Notes: generated by a model not told the origin, from the letters alone. Counted from the first letter of the stretch, positions 1,508 to 35,859 are shown. The stretch is 64,000 nt of DNA from Paraphysomonas bandaiensis (GCA_965644295.1 CBFFRP010000288.1:62001-126000); one strand, 5' to 3'. Made by a program: numbers and translations.

Positions 1508-1595
1508 CCCTCAACAAAGTCAGACTCGCACCTTTTCGTGGTGTTCTGGGGGAAAAGTACCGGAGAGACTCTCTCTGGGAAATTAACGTGAGCCG
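1508..1595 (+). ncRNA. HDV-like (Pr77-type) ribozyme, probably inactive (catalytic C replaced by T at 1583)
   Basis: P1 CCCTCAAC/GTT(CT)GGGGG, P2 CTCGC/GTGAG, P3 ACC/GGT, L3 TTTTCGT, P1.1 TT/AA, P4 CCGGAGAG/CTCTCTGG, J4/2 TTAA. Confidence 0.65.
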
Positions 1596-2016
1596 CAAAC
1601 ATAGTCAGCAGATATTCTTCAGCCCACTCATAGCCGAATGCTTGTGTGGTACAAGGGACACCAATAAGTGTCACTTGTGTAGACGTCTTTGGGCCCTGAC
1701 AAATAAACAGGCATCCGGAAATGGGCCCACCTCAAGGGCATCCGGGACAGGGCCCACCTGAAGGGTAACCGGGGTATTGGGCTGCCTGCTGAAGTCAAGC
1801 ATCCAGGATGTTTACCTTGAGAACTCAGAGCGGAAGTGGTCGCACCTTGGTGCTTGCGGTGACGCACAAGCAGCTTCCGTAGCGTTAAATAGTAGGATAA
1901 AAAAAGTGTGTACTGATTAGTTACAGGTAGAGGTCTAACTAGTTTTCCTAGCATTCATCTAGCAACTAAGTTGGTGCAGGTTTTTAACGCCTATTGCTAA
2001 TAATAAGACTTTCAAT
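1508..2016 (+). mobile_element. Short non-autonomous retroposon (SIDER/RIME-like), copy 1, full length
   Basis: Homologous to 11394-11862, 30986-31605 and 34964-35452. Starts CCCTCAAC, ends ...CTATTGCTAATAATAAGACTTTCAAT, and is flanked by the direct repeat ATGCCTCTG (1497-1505 and 2017-2025). No credible ORF. Confidence 0.85.
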
Positions 2017-2344
2017 ATGCCTCTGTACTCCCTTCGTGTGATCATCATTTGTAGACTTCACGTCGTTTTACTGCTTCAAAAGGTTGAGCATGTTTTGTTT
2101 TCTAACCGCGATTGTATTATGGGCTATGTTTATGCACACTGTACCTCAATAGTTATGAACCGAGTATTTCATAGTTGTCTACTTCTAGTGGTGCCACTTG
2201 AACACTTTGGTGGCAAATACTACTGCTTAGAAGTAGTGTCGGGTAACCACACGATATTTAGTTAATATAGAGATAAAGTAACGTTAAATAAGAAATTTAA
2301 TTCAATTGACATTCTATAATATTGACAGTATAGTCTGCAATAGC

Positions 2345-11393: not shown

Positions 11394-11862
11394 CTGATTA
11401 CTGATTATTAGCAATAGGCGTGTAAGAGTCAAAAGTAATGTAGCAAAACCATTTAACTAACTAGTCCTTAACTCTGATATTCTACTATTCGATTAGGGTT
11501 AGAATTAGGGTTAGCGCTACGAAAGCTGCTTGTGTGTCGCCGCAGGCACCAAGAAGGAAGAAGGTGCAACCACTCAAAGCAAACGCAGTGAGCAACCTGA
11601 CATCTGCTAACTTCAGGATTTTCGAGTTCTTAAGGTGAACAACCCGGATGGCCTTTGAGGTGGGCCCGTTCCCGGATGCCTGTGCATTTGTCATCGCCCA
11701 AAGACGTCTACACAAGTGTCCCCTGTATCACTCTGAGTGTGGGCAGAACAATATCTGCTGATTATATTATATGCAGCTCACGTTATTTTCCCAGAGAAAT
11801 ATCTCCGGTACTCCTTTCCCCCAGAACATCACAAATATGTGCGAGTTCGAATTTGTTGAGGG
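11394..11862 (-). mobile_element. Short non-autonomous retroposon, copy 2 (degenerate ribozyme, internal deletions)
   Basis: Reverse strand starts CCCTCAACAAATTCGAACTCGCAC; shares GTAGACGTCTTTGGG, GGCATCCGGGAACGGGCCCACCTCAA and the 3' CGCCTATTGCTAATAAT with copy 1; tail (TAATCAG)2. Confidence 0.85.
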
Positions 11863-12808
11863 CATTTATGGACATTTCGAGTACAGCTAACTTGAATACT
11901 TTTGTATGTTATGACTTGTAGGGGACTAGGTGCAATTCGGTATCAGATGTGACATACACTCTTCACTGAAATGCTTCAAGTATTGTTTCATAGGCCTGGC
12001 TATAAATATAGATCACTTGCACTGTCATCATTCTGATCTTCGAGCTACACAACACGAAGGATGGAATATAACTTGATGTGTTCGAGGATCTGATTTTGAG
12101 AGTGTTGGAAATTGCTCATTTTAAGCTAGAGATCACAGAGAGAATTTGTCATAAGACTAGATAGATTAATTAAGAACGTTTACACGAAGTTGTGATAAAC
12201 AACACTAACTCATTTTAATCCACGCATAATATCCTAGATATGCGAACCTCTCGTTACTGAACATATCTTGAAAGATCAAACTATTGCAGTTTCTCAATAT
12301 TATCATCACAGCATTTGTACATCACTATATTTCACTGTATTCTTGTACACTGTCTTCAAGTGACATACTGAAGATCCATATTCTAATTGAGAGTTGTGCC
12401 ATAATTGTAGTATCCCTATAATATATAATAGTGTAATTTACTTATATCGCATACAATCGTCTGTCAATACTGTAATTGAAATAGAAGATAGTTTCTGTTC
12501 GAACTTAGATGTCTATTTCGCACAAATATGTGCTTTCTGTTGAACCCATTTCAGGCCAAAAAAACACATTTTAGACAAAGTGGGAATAATTATATAGTTA
12601 AATCGAAGTTGCGTAGTTGCGTTTAGCACTAAAAACTAATCAACTATCAATTCATACGACTTCTGCAACGTTGGTAATTACCTTCATCCGGTGCACTATA
12701 GCAGACAGTAAGTATCATTATCGCTTTCAAACCAACCAATAGAACTTCACTATAGATGAATACTTGAGACTGACCATTACAAGTACGTATTGAAATATAC
12801 GTCAATAC

Positions 12809-17400: not shown

Positions 17401-20400
17401 GTAGCATGCTACCAATCGTACTACCCTGGTTGTGTATACCGCCGACGCTGTTGGAGAAAATCGCTTCAACACAAGGTTGATACTGTGCTGAAGTTTGAAA
17501 GTATACATTCATTGATGCGACCGCCTGATACAATTCTTCATTCACAGCGTGGGCACAATGAGGGTGAGAAAAAATTGCCTAATCAGTCTTCGATAAAAGA
17601 AAGTATGCTTGTAAATAAATTCGAATGGGAAGATGTTGTGGACTGTTGTGTTCTGTCTGCATCGAGTTTGGCTTTCACTATAAAACTGTCTGACGCAAAT
17701 TGTCAGGCGTCTCAGTGTAGCTATGTTGTTCAGAACTGCCCTGCGCACATGATTATGGACATCTTTCACATACGGCGCGGCGTACAGAAGGCACGTCGGC
17801 TAGTAGAAGAAAGTGTGGTTCCTGCCATTAGAAGTGGGCGCAGCAGATTACATAATAGTCGTGTGCAGTCGAGTGGGTTTATATCTGTTGTGACTGACAC
17901 ACAAAGAGATATTGTCGACCAGCGTGCCGTTCGGGACGCTATGATTCAACTTCGAGATATGATCGAGGCAATGGTTGTTGAAATGATCCCAAGTTTACAT
18001 GGACGGTGTAGTGGGTTTGAAGGTATATCTTCTGACGTGACTCCAGATTCCTCCCCGCCGACTACAATGATATGTGATCTTTCTCTTTATGACGCTGATT
18101 TATATGCGAAAGATGATGTTGATGTGGCGCTCGCTGCTTCCCAGCGGCCACTAGTACTACATGTTGTGTTGCCAAACCAGGCGAAATCTAATTTCGACAT
18201 CAAATATATAGTTCTAGAAAGGTTGATGGGTTACTACCGTCTGATAGCGGAGTCTACGCATTACTGTACCTTGCGACCTAATCATACCGCTTCATCTGCG
18301 ACCTCTATTCAAGTGAAGCTTAAATCACAGTACATGCCTCATAATGCCACCTCCAAGGAAATCGATGAATCTGTGACTCCAAGATCCCAGCATCGCCGTT
18401 CAAGTGGGCGGGGTGGGCATTTTTGGAAAGAAGTTAGCTTATCGCCATTCAGCCGTCCTGATTTTTCTGTGAGCGGAATTGTTGACTACGTACATAGGCT
18501 TTTGTTGGCTGCTGAAGATTCCATTTTGCGAACTTCAAACAGCGACTTTTCGTTAAGTAGAAGTGACACTTATTTGGAGCAGCAGCGCCGCGCCTTATGT
18601 GATATAGCGAATGATTGTCTATCCAAAATTGTGTCGGCGACGAGGTCGTTATTAGCGTGGAAATCGCCAGAAGACAAGACAAATAAGCTTGGCCCTTGGG
18701 CTGACGCATATCTTCCTCTCAGTTTGTTCTTTCTAAAGAATAACACACGATTGCTGATCGCAATACTAGCTGTTTCTGCATCAGCGAACTTTGGGGTGTC
18801 TAACGTTCCATGTTTTTCTCGTTTTACCAACATTCGTCATCTAATTCACTGGGAGCTACATTCGCGAGTGATTAGTATGTACACTTGGGTTCGATCTCTT
18901 CACAAAGGAGGGTTAAAGTATTTATTAGAGTCTCGATGTGCGTACTATGGAAGTCGCGTGATGTCACAATTTTTGCAGAAGGAAACGTGTACAGTCGAAA
19001 ATACTGAAGAGCATGCTGACGAGGGCAGTCAGTACTTCACGCCCATACCTGAGGTAATACTATCCGACATATCACTATTGCTTGGCTTTTCTGTATTATG
19101 TATATTGTGAGTATTGTATCTACTATTGTGTGATCAATGCGATGTAGGGGTTTCGCCATGCGCTTCGAGAATGTCTATTAGACGGTTACATGGAAGTTTG
19201 TGCTTTGTACTACACCACGGACTACTCAGACGTTACTCATGTGATTCTGCCTCAACTAGACAGATCACAGCATGACAATTATGTCACACTTCTCATGGAG
19301 AACAAGTGTTTTTCTCTCACGGCCATATCTAGACTGCATGATATAGTTGGAAACACTTTAGTAAATTGCTTATCGATTTTACTGGTACGACTCGTGATTT
19401 CATATATGTTAATTGGGTTTAAAATGTTGTTGTAGAATGAGTATATGATGATTCTTCGAGAATGTGCTGGTAAATCCAATGAAGGTAAGACATTGGTACG
19501 TATACTTTATCGACGTTATATAACTCTCATATTAGCGCCACATGAGTCGGCGAACCCTCCGACAGTTCCAGTGGAGCCCTCGTGTTTCGCGCCTCACCCA
19601 CTGATGGACGTACCCAAGTATGCTACGCGGGGGGCTCAATTAAGGACGTTACCATGGAACCGTAAATCTTTTAGCTCGGATGGGCGCTATAAACATGGCC
19701 TGGGGGGCATGCTTGATTCAGTGTTTTGCGTGATGAGTGCAATTGCCAGCGACTGTGAGCAGATCGAACGGTACATAGAGGTAAAAATTTATTGACTGTT
19801 ATTACCATATTGAGTTGATATCGTGAAAATGGGAATATAGGAGATTGCAGTAGTTATGCGCCCATTCTTTTACACGCAGCTGGTATGTATTGCCACGAAA
19901 CACTCAATTTGATAATCATAGTTCTTGTGATGTAGCTTGCGAGCCTCGAACGTAACGAGTCTGCTGCGCTGCGTAAAATAGTAAACAATATCGACAATGT
20001 ACACTCTCAATTGCACCGACTCCAAGAAAATTTTCAGAGGTGAGTGTACGTACTTTTGGCTGAAGGTATGTTCCACTTATGAACGCTCTCCGTAGGCTAT
20101 GGAAACGTGCCTTGAGAGAGCAATGTCGTGTTATATTTAAATACGTTGAATCTTTCGAATTAAATGTAAATGATGGGGAAACAAGAAAAGCCAGTAGACT
20201 TAATCTGGGTTTGAAATGGAAGCGTATTTCTAAGAAAACAAAGTCTAAGAAGAATCAATCTGGTTCCTCAATACAGGAGAAGGTCACAGAGGAAGGTGCA
20301 GATATTCAGTCGACAGAATGCAAGATTTCTGGTGCTGAGGACGCAACAGGCATCTCACCACATTCAGAATATATATGCTCGGATGCCAATAATAGTGAAC

Positions 20401-22410
20401 TTGAATCCAATGAAATGTGCCCGGAATTCATAGCGCAGAACGATTCCTCGGCTTCGAAGGAAACGGATGATGAGCATGAATCCAATGAAGAGTGTCCGGG
20501 AGTTTTAGCACAGAACAATTCTTCAGCTGCAAAGGATATGGATGATGATCATGAATCCAATGAAGAGTGTCCGGGAGTTTTAGCACAGGACAATTCTTCA
20601 GCTGCAAAGGATATGGATGATGATCATGAATCTAATGAAGAGTATTCGGGAGTTTTAGCACAGAACAATTCTCTAGCTTCAAAGGATACGGATGATGAAG
20701 AAGAAAACAACTACTCAATTGGCGGTTGTGACGATGAGCAATCTACAAGTAGCAGCGAATATGATAAAGGTCCAATTTCGTTTTTTGTCAACAACGTACA
20801 AGATATATTCGAGTCACCAGATGAGTTTGGTCGAAATTTGAATTTTCTTAGTAGACTGATATACAATTTATCGAGTCCAGAAGTATACGACATGTTTTGT
20901 AGCTACGGGCTTATAAGTATAGCGACGCCTCTGTTAAATGCCTTGACGACGGTGCATAACTATGTGGATGGCATAAATGCGGGGTTATGTGAGATGCCTA
21001 TAAATTCCTCTGAATTGAGCAGCGAGGTATGCTGGTGCATGTGTATTATGTTCATTATAAGTAGTGATACAGCTGAGGGGAGAACTGATGAATGTGTACA
21101 AGCTTGCGTATTACTTGATTCTACCTAGCTGGAAAGTTCCCAAGGATATAGCCTCCTCCTCTCCACCGTTGGAGGCCGGCGCTTTCACTACTTTATTTGG
21201 TACAGTAAAAGTCTAACTTGATCACATTAACTCGATGTTTACAGCTGTAGAGGAGACAGATGACGACTGTGCAGATAGTAGTGTACGACACGTTCGGTCT
21301 AAAATAAAGGCACGTAATTTTGTATCATTTTATCTGCGGTCACTCACTATATATGTTACTCTTCAGAGCTTAGATAAATCCCTTTTTGCGACTCTCTGTG
21401 CAATAGAAACTGCATTCAAGAAGAGAACACGAGGGTATATAGGGAACGTTAATTGAATACTGAGACTAACTTGTGGATATAAAATTGCAGGAAGGATATG
21501 GAGTTCCTAGATATATTATCTTCTATCGATGAGTTTCAATCTCCTCTAATTACGAAATTGTATTCGCGTGAGGCACAGCTAGATCTCATGTACCTTGCAT
21601 CGGATTCAGAGACCTTGCGTTCTCCACATAAACCCGATATAGTATCTATCGAGAAAGCTGGATTTAAGTATTCTGAAATGGTGGAGGTAATGTTTTTTTC
21701 TGATTTTATTTATTTTTACAGTGGAGTTTTGTAGATATCGGGGCTATGTGTGAGGGGAATCAGCTCGTTCCCCACACTCTCTGAAGAAAATGCTCAGTCT
21801 TCAACTAATAAAGACGATACACAACCGTTAACAGGTGATGCAGCGGTAGCCTCGGATACGGAGGCGCGGCGCACGAATATACCGATCAACAGCTGCTATA
21901 TTGAGATTGTCGCATATTCTAGATCTGGCACCAAAAGAAATTCCTTCCAAACAAAGGTATGAATTATGCAGCCGCAATGATATTTAACAATCCGTGGATG
22001 CTGTAATATATATGCTAGTGTGCTGCTGCAGGGGACCGAAATCCAACTTGGTTCGACGTATTTCGTTCAGATCCCCAAAGGTGATGTACTGGAACGTATC
22101 ATCTGTACTTCCAATGAAACTCGTGAATTATACTGTCAGGTGTTCGGATACTCTGCCAGGCGGCACGGATCCTTTGGAGAGACTGGACATAATGCTTTAC
22201 AATAGGCGGGTCATATCACCGGCGTCCATGCTATTTGCCGCTGTGACGGAGTCATCTCTGATTGCCAGGACTACAATACAGTTAGAAATGCTCAGACTGA
22301 ATTCTATTAGACAGTGGTTCGAAATGACTTTGTCCGAAGACTATTATCACACCGGTTGGTCAGTGATAATTCATGTTCATACACGCATTGTCAAAGAAAG
22401 AAATTCGTAG
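14494..22410 (+). CDS. Large C2-domain protein (N-terminal C2, DysF-like region, helical region, probable C-terminal C2), multi-exon
   Basis: N-terminal C2 (SPYVRI...TETLTRTRDPKWNECFKF...VKVFDS...DTLIG); VYENQF and WWYA...YRRRCWRK resemble DysF halves. The downstream same-strand ORFs appear to be linked by GT-AG introns; that joining is inferred. Confidence 0.7.
20400..20699 (+). repeat. Coding tandem repeat, 4 x 75 bp (HESNEECPGVLAQNNSSAAKDMDDD)
   Basis: Units start at 20400, 20475, 20550 and 20625. Confidence 0.92.
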
Positions 22411-26856: not shown

Positions 26857-27894
26857 TTACGTATAGTTTATGTACTGAACTCGCCCATCTTTGACCGTGC
26901 GTTTGAACTGAAGCCCTAGACTCAAGTTTAGTCCTAAACCCAACAATGCATCACTAATACTACTATATTCAATCTCCCTTAACTCGGCCCTACCAACTCG
27001 AAACTTCAACTCTTTACTGCCGTTGTCACAATTAGAAACCTCAGACTTCACGGCCACATGTGTAACCCCCCCGTCGTCATTAAGTATACTAACACGAAGT
27101 TGAAAGTTCATCTCACTTCGACGTACAAGAAATGTTCCTTCCTTATTATTTATTACTTCCTGATTCTCACTTGTATCAGTAGAATCGCTCGCCCCACCAC
27201 GCACTAGATACTCAGCCCTCTCTCTTGTCATCACTCCTCCATAATACTCCCAACCACCTAACGATCTAGTATCACACTCAACTGGAGGTGGGCTTTCAAT
27301 TATGCAAGGGCCATATGCCGCCTCTGTGATAGAGTTTTTTTCTCGTCTAATATGAAGTGGTTCCATATTATTTATATGTCGTACTAATCGGTGAACAACG
27401 TCGCGGACAGGACATTGCTTATTCTGTGCTCCCCTACTGTGATCATAGTCACCAAACTGCTCATGTCCTACAGTCCAATACCAGTCTGTAAGGGAATGAC
27501 AACGTACAAAATCATCAAGCTCTTCATACTCCACACAAAGAGGAATAACATCAGCCTTATGAGCTAACACAATCACAGGTATCGCCTCATCCACATACCG
27601 TCTAAGTAACCGTACCCATGGTTCAGTAGAGGCTATAGGGTGATCACCCCCTGAATCAACTACAACCATAACCCCTATCGTATTATCAAATATATAATCA
27701 TGTACACTACGATATGATTGTAGTAAATGTCCTCCTATGTCCCATAATTGATATGTATGGTTTGATATCGTGTAGTTATGTATCTCTACACCTTGAGTAG
27801 GGGTGTGTTCATGGGGATAGTCGGAGTTAATGAGACGTGATATGATAGTAGATTTACCAACACCAGATGATCCGATAAGAAGAAGTTTGTTCAT
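26857..27894 (-). CDS. Ras/Rab-like small GTPase fused to a C-terminal SH2-like domain, single exon
   Basis: G1 GSSGVGKS, G2 PTQG, G3 WDIGG, G4 AHKAD; C-terminus WEYYGGVMTRERAEYLV...EGTFLVRRSE...LRVSI...VTHVAV. Confidence 0.8.
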   Translation of the reverse strand: MNKLLLIGSSGVGKSTIISRLINSDYPHEHTPTQGVEIHNYTISNHTYQLWDIGGHLLQSYRSVHDYIFDNTIGVMVVVDSGGDHPIASTEPWVRLLRRYVDEAIPVIVLAHKADVIPLCVEYEELDDFVRCHSLTDWYWTVGHEQFGDYDHSRGAQNKQCPVRDVVHRLVRHINNMEPLHIRREKNSITEAAYGPCIIESPPPVECDTRSLGGWEYYGGVMTRERAEYLVRGGASDSTDTSENQEVINNKEGTFLVRRSEMNFQLRVSILNDDGGVTHVAVKSEVSNCDNGSKELKFRVGRAELREIEYSSISDALLGLGLNLSLGLQFKRTVKDGRVQYINYT

Positions 27895-27952
27895 TGGTGT
27901 GACTAGTGTGTGATGAATGAATGATATGCATGATACACTGTTCCAAGACTGC

Positions 27953-28276
27953 TGTATGTATGTATGTATGTATGTATGTATGTATGTATGTATGTATGTA
28001 TGTATGTATGTATGTATGTATGTATGTATGTATGTATGTATGTATGTATGTATGTATGTATGTATGTATGTATGTATGTATGTATGTATGTATGTATGTA
28101 TGTATGTATGTATGTATGTATGTATGTATGTATGTATGTATGTATGTATGTATGTATGTATGTATGTATGTATGTATGTATGTATGTATGTATGTATGTA
28201 TGTATGTATGTATGTATGTATGTATGTATGTATGTATGTATGTATGTATGTATGTATGTATGTATGTATGTATGTA
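27953..28276. repeat. (TGTA)n microsatellite, ~81 units
   Basis: Uninterrupted TGTA tract between two divergent genes. Confidence 0.99.
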
Positions 28277-28444
28277 CCGGCTACAATGGCATTACGGGTT
28301 ACAGGTGCTGTGTTGGATATGTGTTCATGTTGTGGACTCTGCTCTGCTTATTCTTAAGAGCTCCATCAGTCTGAGCTCACTCACACGACACACATGAACA
28401 CCCACTACATAAAACACTCATCCAGATACATTTCTATTAAACTC

Positions 28445-30520
28445 ATGTCCTCACTAGTTGAAAGAACAGTACTCCAACAACTCCATAGCTTCTTTCCCTC
28501 TACTAACCCCCTTCTACTGGTAACATACATACATACATACATACATAACCCTTATATCATAATATACATATAGTTATTAAGTATAAGTGGTGGATGTGAT
28601 AGTATGACACTTCTTCATTCAATTGCTGCTGTACGGGAGAACTGGAAGGCCCCAATTAATACACATATCATCCATTTCAATCATAAGGCTCGTATAGAGT
28701 CTGATGAAGAGGTATCATACACAGTTATATTGTATCATACTGTTATTGTTATATATAATGAGATCATAGGAAACTTTTGTTCGTCATTGGGCGGATGTTT
28801 ACAATATGCCAATTCATGTATTTGCTTTCCCTGAGATGGATAGAAGATCGATAGGTTTCCAAGCTCGTGCCAGAGAATGGAGGCGTCATCATGGACAACA
28901 AGTGCTACGTAATCTATGGCAAGGATGCAGTGGGAGTGCTAGTATTCTTACTGGACATCATGCGGAAGACCAGGTGGAAACCAGAGTGATGCGGCTTCTC
29001 CGCGGTACGCACTTGTCTAGGTTAAGCGCTGTAAGGCTGTTGCATTCTACTGATATTTCCTCTGTTAATGGGGCACTTAAGATGCAGTCGAAAGAAGGCT
29101 TTTATGCTCGTCCGCTTATTCCTCTGCGAAAAAGTGATCTTATCGGATATATGCGTGAACGGGGCCTGGAATGGAGAGAGGACGTCTCGAACACTGACTG
29201 CAAGTACACAAGAAATGCTGTCAGATTGCGCCTATTACCTGAGATGGAAAAATCCGCTGGTGGGTGGGAAGCCCTGCACAGGTACATTTATGCATTTACT
29301 CTGGTAGAATTAAGACAAGTATCACTAGTTCGCTAGCTATTTCACAAGGAAAAGGTTGATGTTTTACCTGATTGCAGGCGATTGTTGGACTTAGAACAGC
29401 AGAGTAGACACCTCAGAAACTGGATTGAGAAAGAGGTATGATGAGACGTTTGACAGTGATCAGGACATTACTTTTGTATCTAGACAAATGATTTTATGAC
29501 TGCTTTTCCTGACTGGTTGCAAGAGTTCCCCAACTTAAACCGAGTGGAGGTTATTATATCCAATCCTTTCCGTAAACTTTCCCCCTTGGTGCAAACGGAA
29601 CTCCTCCGGATATTGGTTGATAGATGTGGAAGTCCTTCACACAAAGTTTGCGAAGAAACAGAGGAACTTGCTCCTTTTTTGTCTCACCGACAGACGGAGA
29701 GACTACTCTCTCTTGCACTTAGTGCTGGAGAGGAAAGTGGAGACAGTGGCAATGCCCACGTTCCATCTGCTCTCACACTCTCGCGAGAATTTCGTGCTGT
29801 GAAGGAAGGGTCGAAGCTTATTATTCACCGAATAAACTTAAAAACTGACACGTCAGTCACTACAGTCGACAATTTTACCTTTCAGAATGTTCAGTCGGGA
29901 CCCTATTCTATATCAATCCATCATCCACAGGTGTTTAAATATATTTCAATGATAGAGAAGATATAGGCTCACTACATTTGGTATGTAGGACATTCAAATC
30001 TCTGTTGAAAGGCACACCTGCAAGTGCAAGGTATGCGACGCGATAGATTACTCGAAGCCCCGCCATGGTTCTATCAGCCTACGTGGCGGTTCTGTCATCC
30101 TCTGTGGAATTCCCACGGGCGCGCAACTTGGTGTCAGGTATGTCTTCTCTTCATTGGAAGTTTATTGGCCAACGCATGCCGCTTATATGTGTAGATTCCG
30201 TAAAGCAGGTGACAAGTTCCACCCACCGTGGAGATCGGGTATTAACATGTGACATATCTTGTATTTATTAATTTTGTATTTAACAAGAATCTATAAGATT
30301 GAAAGACTTCCTTCGAGAGATTAGTATTCCTGTGGGTGATCGAGACAGTGTGCCACTAATAGATATGGACGGACAGGTGTGATGTGAAGTGTATTGGTAC
30401 TGTTGCATAATTTCTCTGCAGGTTATTGCAGTCCCTCCGTACACCGCTTCACAGTTTAGTTGTTCCAGTATAGGTGAGGTGGGGAATTCGTGCATTGTAG
30501 TAAAAATAGGTTACCAATAA
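28445..30520 (+). CDS. tilS: tRNA(Ile)-lysidine synthase TilS (organellar), multi-exon, start uncertain
   Basis: PP-loop SISGGCDS, HFNH, ARAREWR, LTGHHAEDQVET, RPLI, WREDVSN, YTRNAVR, and C-terminal RKAGDKF...LKDFLREISIP. Confidence 0.92.
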
Positions 30521-34661: not shown

Positions 34662-34963
34662 CTGTGCGGTGACTAGATTGTATATAAGCATGGCTTTGGT
34701 AGCTTGTTTTGCGTGGCGGAGAGTTTCGTCTATCTTTTATGGTTAGCAGTATCCGTCTTACTTAACTGAAATTTGTCTCTCCGGTTTAACTACCCTGGAT
34801 TTTGTTTTATTTTCTTCTCTTACGCACCCCGTACAATACATCAATATTTTCCCATTCGTATCACACAGAACACGCCAAGTAACGCATGATATTGCTCCAT
34901 CACCCCGTCATATGTCATATTTGACATTTTTCGATAGCTTATTTAGAAATGGATTTGCTATAT

Positions 34964-35452
34964 ATTGAAAGTCTTAAAAAACCTGCACCAACTTAGTAGC
35001 TAGATGAATGCTAGGCAAACTAGTTAGACCTCTACCTGTAACTAATCAGTACACACTTTTTTTATCCTACTATTTAACGCTACGAAAGAGGCTTGTACGT
35101 CGCCGCAAGCACCAAGGTGCGACCACTTCCGCTCTGAGTTTTTAAGGTGAACATCCCGGATGCTTGACTTCAGCAGGCAGCCCAATATCCCGGTTACCCT
35201 TCAGGTGGGCCATGTCCTTGAGTCTTGAGGTGGGCCCATTCCCGGATGCCTGTGCATTCGGAATGACCCAAAGACGTCTACACAAGTGATACTTATTGCT
35301 GTCCCTTGTACCACACAAGCATTCGGCTATGAGTGGACAGAAGAATAGCTGCTGACTATTTTTGCGGCTCATGTTAGTTTCCCAGAGAGAATCTCTCCGG
35401 TACTTATCCCCCAGAACACCACGAAAAGGTGCGAGTCCGACTTTGTTGAGGG
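34964..35452 (-). mobile_element. Short non-autonomous retroposon, copy 4, full length, best-preserved ribozyme
   Basis: Colinear with copy 1 over its whole length, from CCCTCAACAAAGTCGGACTCGCACC to AAGACTTTCAAT. Confidence 0.88.
35365..35452 (-). ncRNA. HDV-like (Pr77-type) ribozyme with the catalytic C retained (35377)
   Basis: CCCTCAAC AAAGT CGGACTCGC ACC TTTTCGT GGT GTTCTGGGGG ATAAGTA CCGGAGAG ATT CTCTCTGG GAAA CTAA C ATGAGCCG, read as P1-P2-P3-L3-P3'-P1'-J1/4-P4-J4/2-P2'. Confidence 0.72.
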
Positions 35453-35859
35453 CAGTAAATGCTATTCATCTATTCTTGACCCATTCACGGGTGCCCACAG
35501 AAGGGAAATGTCATTCAACCTAGTAAAAGTGGTTGAATTTCCTATTCATACTAATTTAGGTGTTACAACCTAGTCAAAGTAACAAATGATAAACCTAGTC
35601 TTAACATATTATATATTGTACTTATACATTATATACTACATATTAAAAAAACGAGATAACAGAATTTTGTAAAACCAATACAGCATGAATAAGTATCAAC
35701 CAGTTGTAACAGTGACAGCAACTAGTGCTATATTTTTATCTTCCTTATAGTAGTACGAGGTATATGAGACAACAGATTGACGATACGTTAATAAGAAGGT
35801 TTATTAATATTAATTATAATTTACGCAATAAAGAGAACATTAATATAGGATTCAGCCAT

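Follow-up and report, generated by a model that had tools for sequence, protein, structure and literature searches.

The window analysed here, a stretch of 64,000 nt from Paraphysomonas bandaiensis (GCA_965644295.1 CBFFRP010000288.1:62001-126000), holds two convergent genes with a short retroposon copy between them. The plus-strand gene ends near 34789 with a poly-A end and the minus-strand gene near 35800-35850; the retroposon lies on the minus strand and follows the latter gene in sense, at a distance of about 350-400 nt. The first 88 nt of this copy are the subject of the present analysis; judged by their sequence, they probably constitute a diverged self-cleaving ribozyme of the hepatitis delta virus (HDV)-like, Pr77/L1Tc type, and they head a family of non-autonomous retroposons without long terminal repeats (non-LTR) that has recently been active. 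The parts of the copy and its relatives in the window are as follows.

34962-35452, minus strand: whole 491-nt non-coding retroposon copy, its extent set by comparison of copies
35136-35452, minus strand: 5' module of about 317 nt, common with ~1.2-kb retroposon families, whose copies align over the first ~318 nt only
34962-35135, minus strand: 3' module from the 3' untranslated region (UTR) of a long interspersed nuclear element (LINE) with APE and reverse transcriptase (RT) domains (89% identity over 152 nt)
35365-35452, minus strand: Pr77/L1Tc-type HDV-like ribozyme motif of 88 nt, recognised by its sequence, by a covariance model built from metagenome sequences and by a hidden Markov model (HMM)
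1508-2018, plus strand: second copy of the 491-nt family (511 nt), with the ribozyme motif at 1508-1595 (metagenome-built model, 28.9 bits, E 1.5e-5)
11774-11864, minus strand: decayed ribozyme head of a third, older copy, with L3 and P3 mutated (metagenome-built model, 12.2 bits, E 0.21)

The copy between the genes terminates in ...AAGACTTTCAATAT without poly-A, and its target-site duplication is degraded; the copy at 1508-2018 is bounded by a 9-bp duplication, ATGCCTCTG.

A preliminary description of the locus had drawn 35365-35452 as a nested double pseudoknot, and all the helices that it listed were recovered when the sequence of the minus strand was read again. Numbering the element 5' to 3' on that strand, with nt 1 at 35452, its paired (P), loop (L) and joining (J) segments are these.

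35445-35452, minus strand: P1 5' strand, CCCUCAAC, partner of 35408-35417
35431-35439, minus strand: P2 5' strand, CGGACUCG (A17 bulged), plus C22; complement of 35365-35371
35418-35430, minus strand: P3, ACC/GGU (A23, C24 and C25 with G33, G34 and U35), around the 7-nt L3, UUUUCGU
35408-35417, minus strand: P1 3' strand, GUUCUGGGGG, 10 nt long against 7 in the wider class described below
35382-35400, minus strand: P4 hairpin read from the sequence, 8 bp with a 3-nt loop, C53-G60 with C64-G71
35374-35381, minus strand: J4/2, GAAACUAA, with the candidate catalytic C76 at 35377; fits the class motif GGAARCYAA
35365-35371, minus strand: P2 3' strand, UGAGCCG, read from the sequence; the P2 columns covary strongly in the class

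P1 is built on five solid, G-C-rich pairs, C1-C5 with G41-G45 (one U-G included), and its pairing beyond these depends on the register chosen. In one register A6, A7 and C8 pair with U38, U37 and G36 over a C39-U40 bulge, giving 8 pairs in total; in the register of the covariance model, GUU is an insertion and one pair plus an A.C mismatch follow the first five, giving 6/7 pairs. The bulge register retains the usual closing C-G pair beside P3, and it is favoured by the covariance model itself for copies lacking one C and one G. P2 joins C14, G15, G16, C18, U19, C20 and G21 to U82-G88 (7 pairs, one of them G-U, with A17 bulged) and crosses P1, as the outer pseudoknot of HDV-like ribozymes requires. 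C22 pairs with G81 in the family consensus; the window copy has A at 81, and this G-to-A change is its sole departure from the consensus within the core. The P3/L3 columns are invariant across the class, P1.1 is the single pair U28-A46 (U at 35425, A at 35407) and obeys the covariation rule of the class, and the candidate catalytic C76 sits in the C-N-A-A context after P4 that HDV-like ribozymes require. The predicted cleavage site is directly 5' of the C at 35452.

That position is also where a repeat family begins, as the preliminary description had held. A 116-nt query against the 62.5-Mb genome gave 1,846 first-look candidates, and nearly all of the best 40 of these 1,846 alignments start at, or a few bases from, query position 19, the counterpart of 35452. 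The 30 copies retrieved by the first DNA query all diverge from unrelated flanks at nt 1 or a few nt from it, and when the fetched loci and the window were compared by BLAST, 38 instances reached the 5' end, nearly all of them beginning with CCCTC or CCTTC. Perfect target-site duplications of 8-14 bp (mode 11) abut nt 1 in 19 of the 31 copies examined, with no extra base between duplication and nt 1 in those 19. The core motif has 727 matches genome-wide against 6 for a reversed control. The family comprises roughly a thousand copies, at least 727 of them with an intact core, and by a rough estimate the retroposon families make up 1-2% of the 62-Mb genome.

Three related non-coding families have the first ~317 nt in common, one of ~491 nt and two of ~1.2 kb. 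The two ~1.2-kb families differ in P4 (variants A and B), and their copies are 96-99.9% identical, which points to recent activity. In variant B, P4 consists of 7 bp, all Watson-Crick, with a 4-nt loop, so that pairing is kept though stem and loop differ from variant A. The body of the ~1.2-kb elements has no similarity to the fetched LINE loci and no convincing open reading frame (ORF). All three families terminate in ...TTTCAATAT directly at the target-site duplication, without poly-A.

Copies have inserted into one another on occasion. At two loci (L005 and L019, on G000:C485 and C404) retroposon copies lie within the ribozyme head of older copies, the target-site duplication falling inside the L3/P3/P1 segment, so that one head is nested in another. 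At G000:C421:70105-73370, three heads on the same strand, spaced by 1,393 and 1,775 nt and with identical upstream flanks, suggest a local array, tandem or segmental, of the ~1.2-kb element.

The other end of the retroposons comes from a LINE. Over its last ~170 nt the 491-nt family matches LINE 3' UTRs, with 89% identity to that of an APE- and RT-encoding LINE at G000:C440 (L075), where the similarity lies just past the ORF, and 82% to that of a second LINE group (L077); the ~1.2-kb families bear a shortened form of this tail. The families are therefore LINE-mobilised elements resembling short interspersed nuclear elements (SINEs). A conventional SINE would be short, non-coding, high in copy number and provided with just such a LINE-derived tail, its head would descend from a polymerase III small RNA gene (tRNA, 5S, 7SL or snRNA), and the ribozyme-like fold would be incidental. 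We regard this as very improbable here, since an Rfam scan gives no match to the head, tRNA, 5S, 7SL and snRNAs included, even at E <= 10, and since the head fits the ribozyme class described below at E about 1e-8.

The tail-sharing LINE encodes SET, APE and RT domains in one very long frame, where Pfam gives no match to RNase H. Two independent full-length copies of it (group C) begin at the same base, AATTCTCTGCCC..., and carry no ribozyme. The second LINE group (group D) has no motif within ~1.9 kb upstream of the estimated ORF start, and a LINE locus of group A has neither ribozyme nor tail. Among the first 100 listed motif matches, none is adjacent to an RT or APE match, and in a genome-wide search with the canonical model, in which 150 of ~10,800 candidates were scored, no canonical copy emerged and nothing ranked above the retroposon copies (at most 42 bits). 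The head and the tail of the retroposons thus appear to have different origins.

The SET domain of this LINE (PF00856, E 9e-9) lies just upstream of APE in the same frame, both at L074:1880-4204 (minus strand, G000:C25) and at G000:C440. It is preceded by an N-terminal part of ~970 aa without Pfam match, and the open frames of intact copies reach ~3,000 aa. No LINE with a SET domain has, to our knowledge, been described.

The likeness of the head to Pr77 had been asserted in the preliminary description, and we therefore assembled trypanosomatid sequences for comparison. Pr77 of L1Tc was reconstructed from primers printed in PMC3185411 and PMC4748587, and LmSIDER2A, TvSIDER1, L1Tco and the head of the Trypanosoma vivax ingi element were taken from the supplement of PMC4035085. 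These sequences and the window element have in common a C-rich start, CACC-L3-GGU with L3 ending in CGU, AGUAC, a hairpin and GGAARCYAA. A strict motif drawn on these features (CACCU-N3-CGUGGU ... AGUAC ... GGAARCYAA) fits the window element, L1Tco and LmSIDER2A, the last two of which are reported to be active in co-transcriptional cleavage (PMC4035085). The resemblance is therefore real, and it extends well beyond these organisms.

When the same motif was used for retrieval from a metagenome collection, where about one match was expected by chance, at least 120 contigs from varied samples matched it (L079-L198), representing 56 distinct sequences. Their layout is constant: a 7-bp P1, J1/2, a 7-bp P2, CACC, a 7-nt L3, GGU, the 7-nt 3' strand of P1, 3 nt, AGUAC, P4, GGAARCYAA, 2 nt and the 3' strand of P2, with J1/2 mostly 1-3 nt and up to 7 in one family. 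The helix sequences themselves are very different, and both P1 and P2 are at least 6/7 paired in 45 of the 55 scorable sequences. Among 27 cleanly aligned members the share of paired cells is 94.9%, compared with 64.5% in shuffles and 38-45% with slid partners, double-change cells number 174 against 52 in shuffles, and all seven P1 pairs and all seven P2 pairs covary; in this set the P1 starts were picked by complementarity and the members filtered for pairing, while for P2 and P1.1 position was the sole criterion. The single pair of P1.1 covaries in every one of the 27 (UA in 17, CG in 8, AU in 2).

The flanks of multi-copy metagenome families part exactly at nt 1 of P1, and three loci have ORFs with APE and RT domains 0.3-1.1 kb downstream of the ribozyme. 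The nearest protein clusters of one ribozyme-headed metagenomic LINE are mostly arthropod and chordate, on very few records, and one contig adjoins a GH64 gene whose nearest protein clusters are from Ascomycota. Rfam gave no match at E <= 1 for the 14 canonical members tested; as it is silent both on these and on the window element, the subclass is absent from that database. In one metagenomic family (L117, L123, L127, L149, L152 and L158), A-rich runs stand a few bases upstream of P1, which could reflect head-to-tail arrays of poly-A-tailed elements.

The Pr77 signature is thus not specific to the ingi clade or to kinetoplastids, given that at least 120 metagenome contigs carry it. This bears on a further claim of the preliminary description, that an ingi-clade ribozyme had spread in this genome. 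The apparently different origins of head and tail leave that claim without support, and so do the two full-length copies of the ribozyme-less LINE with the same tail and the missing poly-A.

A covariance model built from the 27 metagenome sequences aligns to 35452-35365 end to end (40.1 bits, E 2.6e-8), and an HMM from the same alignment matches L1Tco (2.5e-11), LmSIDER2A (5e-10), the window element (2.1e-8) and TvSIDER1 (8e-5), scores that are partly circular as far as the fixed core is concerned, because the retrieval motif was built to include the window element. None of 800 shuffled controls fell below E = 3 with the HMM. Several points stand outside the circularity: the existence of a covarying class, the presence of validated ribozymes within it, the match to TvSIDER1 (which falls outside the retrieval motif), the agreement of the window element with the class in P1, P2, P4 and P1.1, and the coincidence of the alignment start with the separately mapped 5' boundary. 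On these grounds we conclude that the head of the window element is a homologue of the Pr77/L1Tc-type HDV-like ribozyme.

A number of results weigh against this interpretation or against a working ribozyme, beginning with the circularity just described. The Rfam scan of the window finds no HDV-type family, either at the gathering threshold or at E <= 10, but only noise. A covariance model built from four trypanosomatid sequences alone, a check that the preliminary description had suggested, does place 35452-35362 first in the window and aligns to it end to end, yet with only 9.6 bits and E 0.38. Covariation among the genomic copies, the other comparative check suggested there, yields the two variants of P4 and a handful of scattered compensatory changes, among them C1-G45 to U-A in a decayed copy and the joint loss of one 5' C and one G of the run in three copies, and is otherwise weak because the family is young and uniform; the copies with compensatory changes were moreover picked by the covariance model itself, which makes them weak evidence. 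Plain minimum-free-energy folding recovers P1 and P4, yet its z-score (-0.56) is not significant, as expected for a pseudoknotted fold. The Rfam result, the score of the trypanosomatid model and the folding z-score would all suit a chance resemblance to HDV-like ribozymes at the start of a repeat. Such a coincidence is in our view the least probable explanation of all: it would have to produce end-to-end profile matches at E about 1e-8 that start at a separately defined 5' boundary, obedience to the P1.1 rule, and 727 motif matches against 6 in the reversed control.

Other results concern activity rather than ancestry. GGU and AGUAC are separated by 13 nt in the window family, against 10 in nearly all metagenome members, L1Tco and LmSIDER2A; none of the 56 distinct metagenome sequences retrieved has a spacing of 13 nt, and one has 11, so that the caution voiced in the preliminary description about an atypical P1 was justified. 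Three extra bases at the P3/P1 junction (in the 3' strand of P1), the bulged A in P2 and a J1/2 of 5 nt set the element apart from the metagenomic class, in which the 7-nt 3' strand of a 7-bp P1 directly follows GGU, P2 is an uninterrupted 7 bp and J1/2 is mostly shorter, and equally from trypanosomatid Pr77. In the strict class register P1 has 6/7 pairs and P2 5/7. Finally, in at least 12 RNA contigs other upstream flanks continue over the predicted cleavage site and on into nt 1, so that uncleaved co-transcripts, or DNA carry-over, exist; the RNA data are assembled contigs from four runs, in which RNA ends are not visible.

These irregularities and the boundary-crossing contigs would all be accounted for if the head were a true Pr77-type descendant that is catalytically dead here, kept as an internal RNA polymerase II promoter, the role of Pr77 in Trypanosoma cruzi, or as a 5' structure serving stability or retrotransposition, with nt 1 as the transcription start. 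There are precedents: the SIDER2A ribozyme of Leishmania braziliensis is non-functional though the element is kept, and Pr77 contains a downstream promoter element, CGTG, at +25 to +28 (PMC4035085 and PMC4748587, respectively). CGTG occurs at +30 to +33 of the window element, where it is also part of the ribozyme core and so carries no independent weight. Set against this are the invariant core, the context of the catalytic C and P1.1, all preserved in the consensus of three or more subfamilies that are or recently were active, the pairing of P4 in both variants A and B despite their differences, and, weakly, the insertions without an extra 5' base, which fit an uncapped, processed end. Strongly deviant P1 and L3 have also been reported in R2 ribozymes (PMC3774820). 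We consider a dead relic unlikely, while giving it appreciable weight. Irregular as P1 and P2 are, self-cleavage of the window-family head is likely, not assured; a possible promoter function within the element, like that of trypanosome Pr77, would come in addition.

If the head is an active ribozyme, the life cycle of the family may be pictured as follows. A copy would be transcribed, often within a longer read-through transcript; its head would adopt the nested double pseudoknot, and the C at 35377 would catalyse scission just 5' of C35452, leaving an element RNA that starts exactly at nt 1 with a 5'-OH. The reverse transcriptase of a LINE would then recognise the LINE-derived 3' tail and copy the RNA by target-primed reverse transcription, which would yield the 8-14 bp target-site duplications.

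It is well established, for insects, other metazoans and trypanosomes, that HDV-like ribozymes set the 5' ends of non-LTR retroelements and of their short derivatives, among them R2 and its SIDEs, Baggins, RTE and L1Tc/NARTc/RIME/SIDER (cf. PMC6765202). The closest known system is the L1TcRz/Pr77 of L1Tc, L1Tco, ingi, NARTc, RIME and SIDER (PMC3185411, PMC4035085), which has the same core and layout, a P1 starting with C at nt 1 and a one-pair P1.1. Like the window motif, it is found at the exact 5' end of non-LTR retroelements and of their non-coding derivatives, with target-site duplications of similar length (about 11-12 bp in trypanosomatids) and CGTG near +25 to +33, and one profile matches both. 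The two differ in host and in their 3' ends, since trypanosomatid elements had been screened by their poly-A tract (PMC4035085) and, unlike L1Tc/ingi/SIDER, the window families end without one. Moreover, the trypanosomatid LINE and its short derivatives share Pr77, whereas the tail-sharing LINE is here ribozyme-less in the two full-length copies examined.

A similar arrangement is known from the R2 ribozyme and the R2 SIDEs of insects (PMC3414825, PMC3774820), in which an HDV-like ribozyme determines where, within a co-transcript, the 5' end of a non-LTR element lies and short derivatives keep the ribozyme and the 3' end, again without poly-A tail. R2 is however specific to a site in 28S rDNA and uses a restriction-like endonuclease, and its ribozyme has a core nearer to that of HDV, with another P1 G-C orientation and another P1.1 (PMC4035085). 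SIDEs, furthermore, are internal deletions of their own LINE, whereas the head and the tail of the window family seem to come from different sources. With HDV, CPEB3 and the drz-type ribozymes of Rfam the window motif shares the nested double-pseudoknot topology and the catalytic C in J4/2; it differs from them in a P1 that starts with C rather than with a G1-U wobble and in a P1.1 of a single pair. The metagenomic family has identical core motifs and, as described above, parts from its flanks at nt 1 of P1, in some cases ahead of ORFs with APE and RT.

The searchable literature reports no HDV-like ribozyme for diatoms or other stramenopiles, and it discusses Pr77 for trypanosomatids only. Two aspects are of wider interest. 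The Pr77-type core defines a broad family outside Rfam that spans several eukaryotic groups; the trypanosomatid Pr77 hallmark thereby becomes part of a far larger group of sequences, a candidate for curation as an RNA family that could help to annotate the 5' ends of retroposons. The second aspect is that a ribozyme of this kind here stands at the head of SINE-like elements, while the LINE with which they share the tail shows none in the two full-length copies examined. A very young and abundant family with seemingly different sources of head and tail bears on how SINE-like elements are assembled, and the insertion at the tight P3/P1 junction is a natural variant that tests the tolerance of the fold.

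We would go further only tentatively, to a possibility that we lean somewhat against: that the Pr77-type ribozyme is an ancient, pan-eukaryotic 5' module of non-LTR retroelements (in diatoms, fungi, eukaryotes of soil, moss and coral, and kinetoplastids), captured here as the head of a new type of SINE on the tail of an unrelated, ribozyme-less, SET-domain LINE. Were this true, a short element could define where it begins within whatever read-through transcript contains it, and would need no polymerase III head.

As to the host, the genome had been taken in the preliminary description for a non-kinetoplastid one, and this can be upheld. The flanking genes have GT..AG introns of 44-120 nt that are spliced in RNA assemblies, the nearest protein cluster of an ABC-transporter exon in the window is from a diatom, and the locus is represented in marine poly-A metatranscriptomes. 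The host is therefore an intron-bearing, stramenopile-like alga and not a kinetoplastid, its diatom likeness coming from that one protein cluster and the marine metatranscriptomes. The retroposon family is itself abundant in spliced, poly-A transcriptome assemblies and is thus transcribed.

Some further features of the window may be recorded. Identification of the neighbouring minus-strand gene as LTV1 was not confirmed (its largest exon has no Pfam match), and an 812-aa ORF gave no match in a protein homology search. Just upstream of the element, 35480-35600 holds a short repeat rich in GACTAGGT-like words, which recurs beside a LINE at L074:7940-8120 and is perhaps a further small mobile element. 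At 20396-20695, three tandem repeats of 75 nt (83-87% identity) lie inside a 349-aa ORF (20079-21128) without Pfam match, and a long tandem array with a period of 8 nt and 98 registers extends over approximately 27793-28600.

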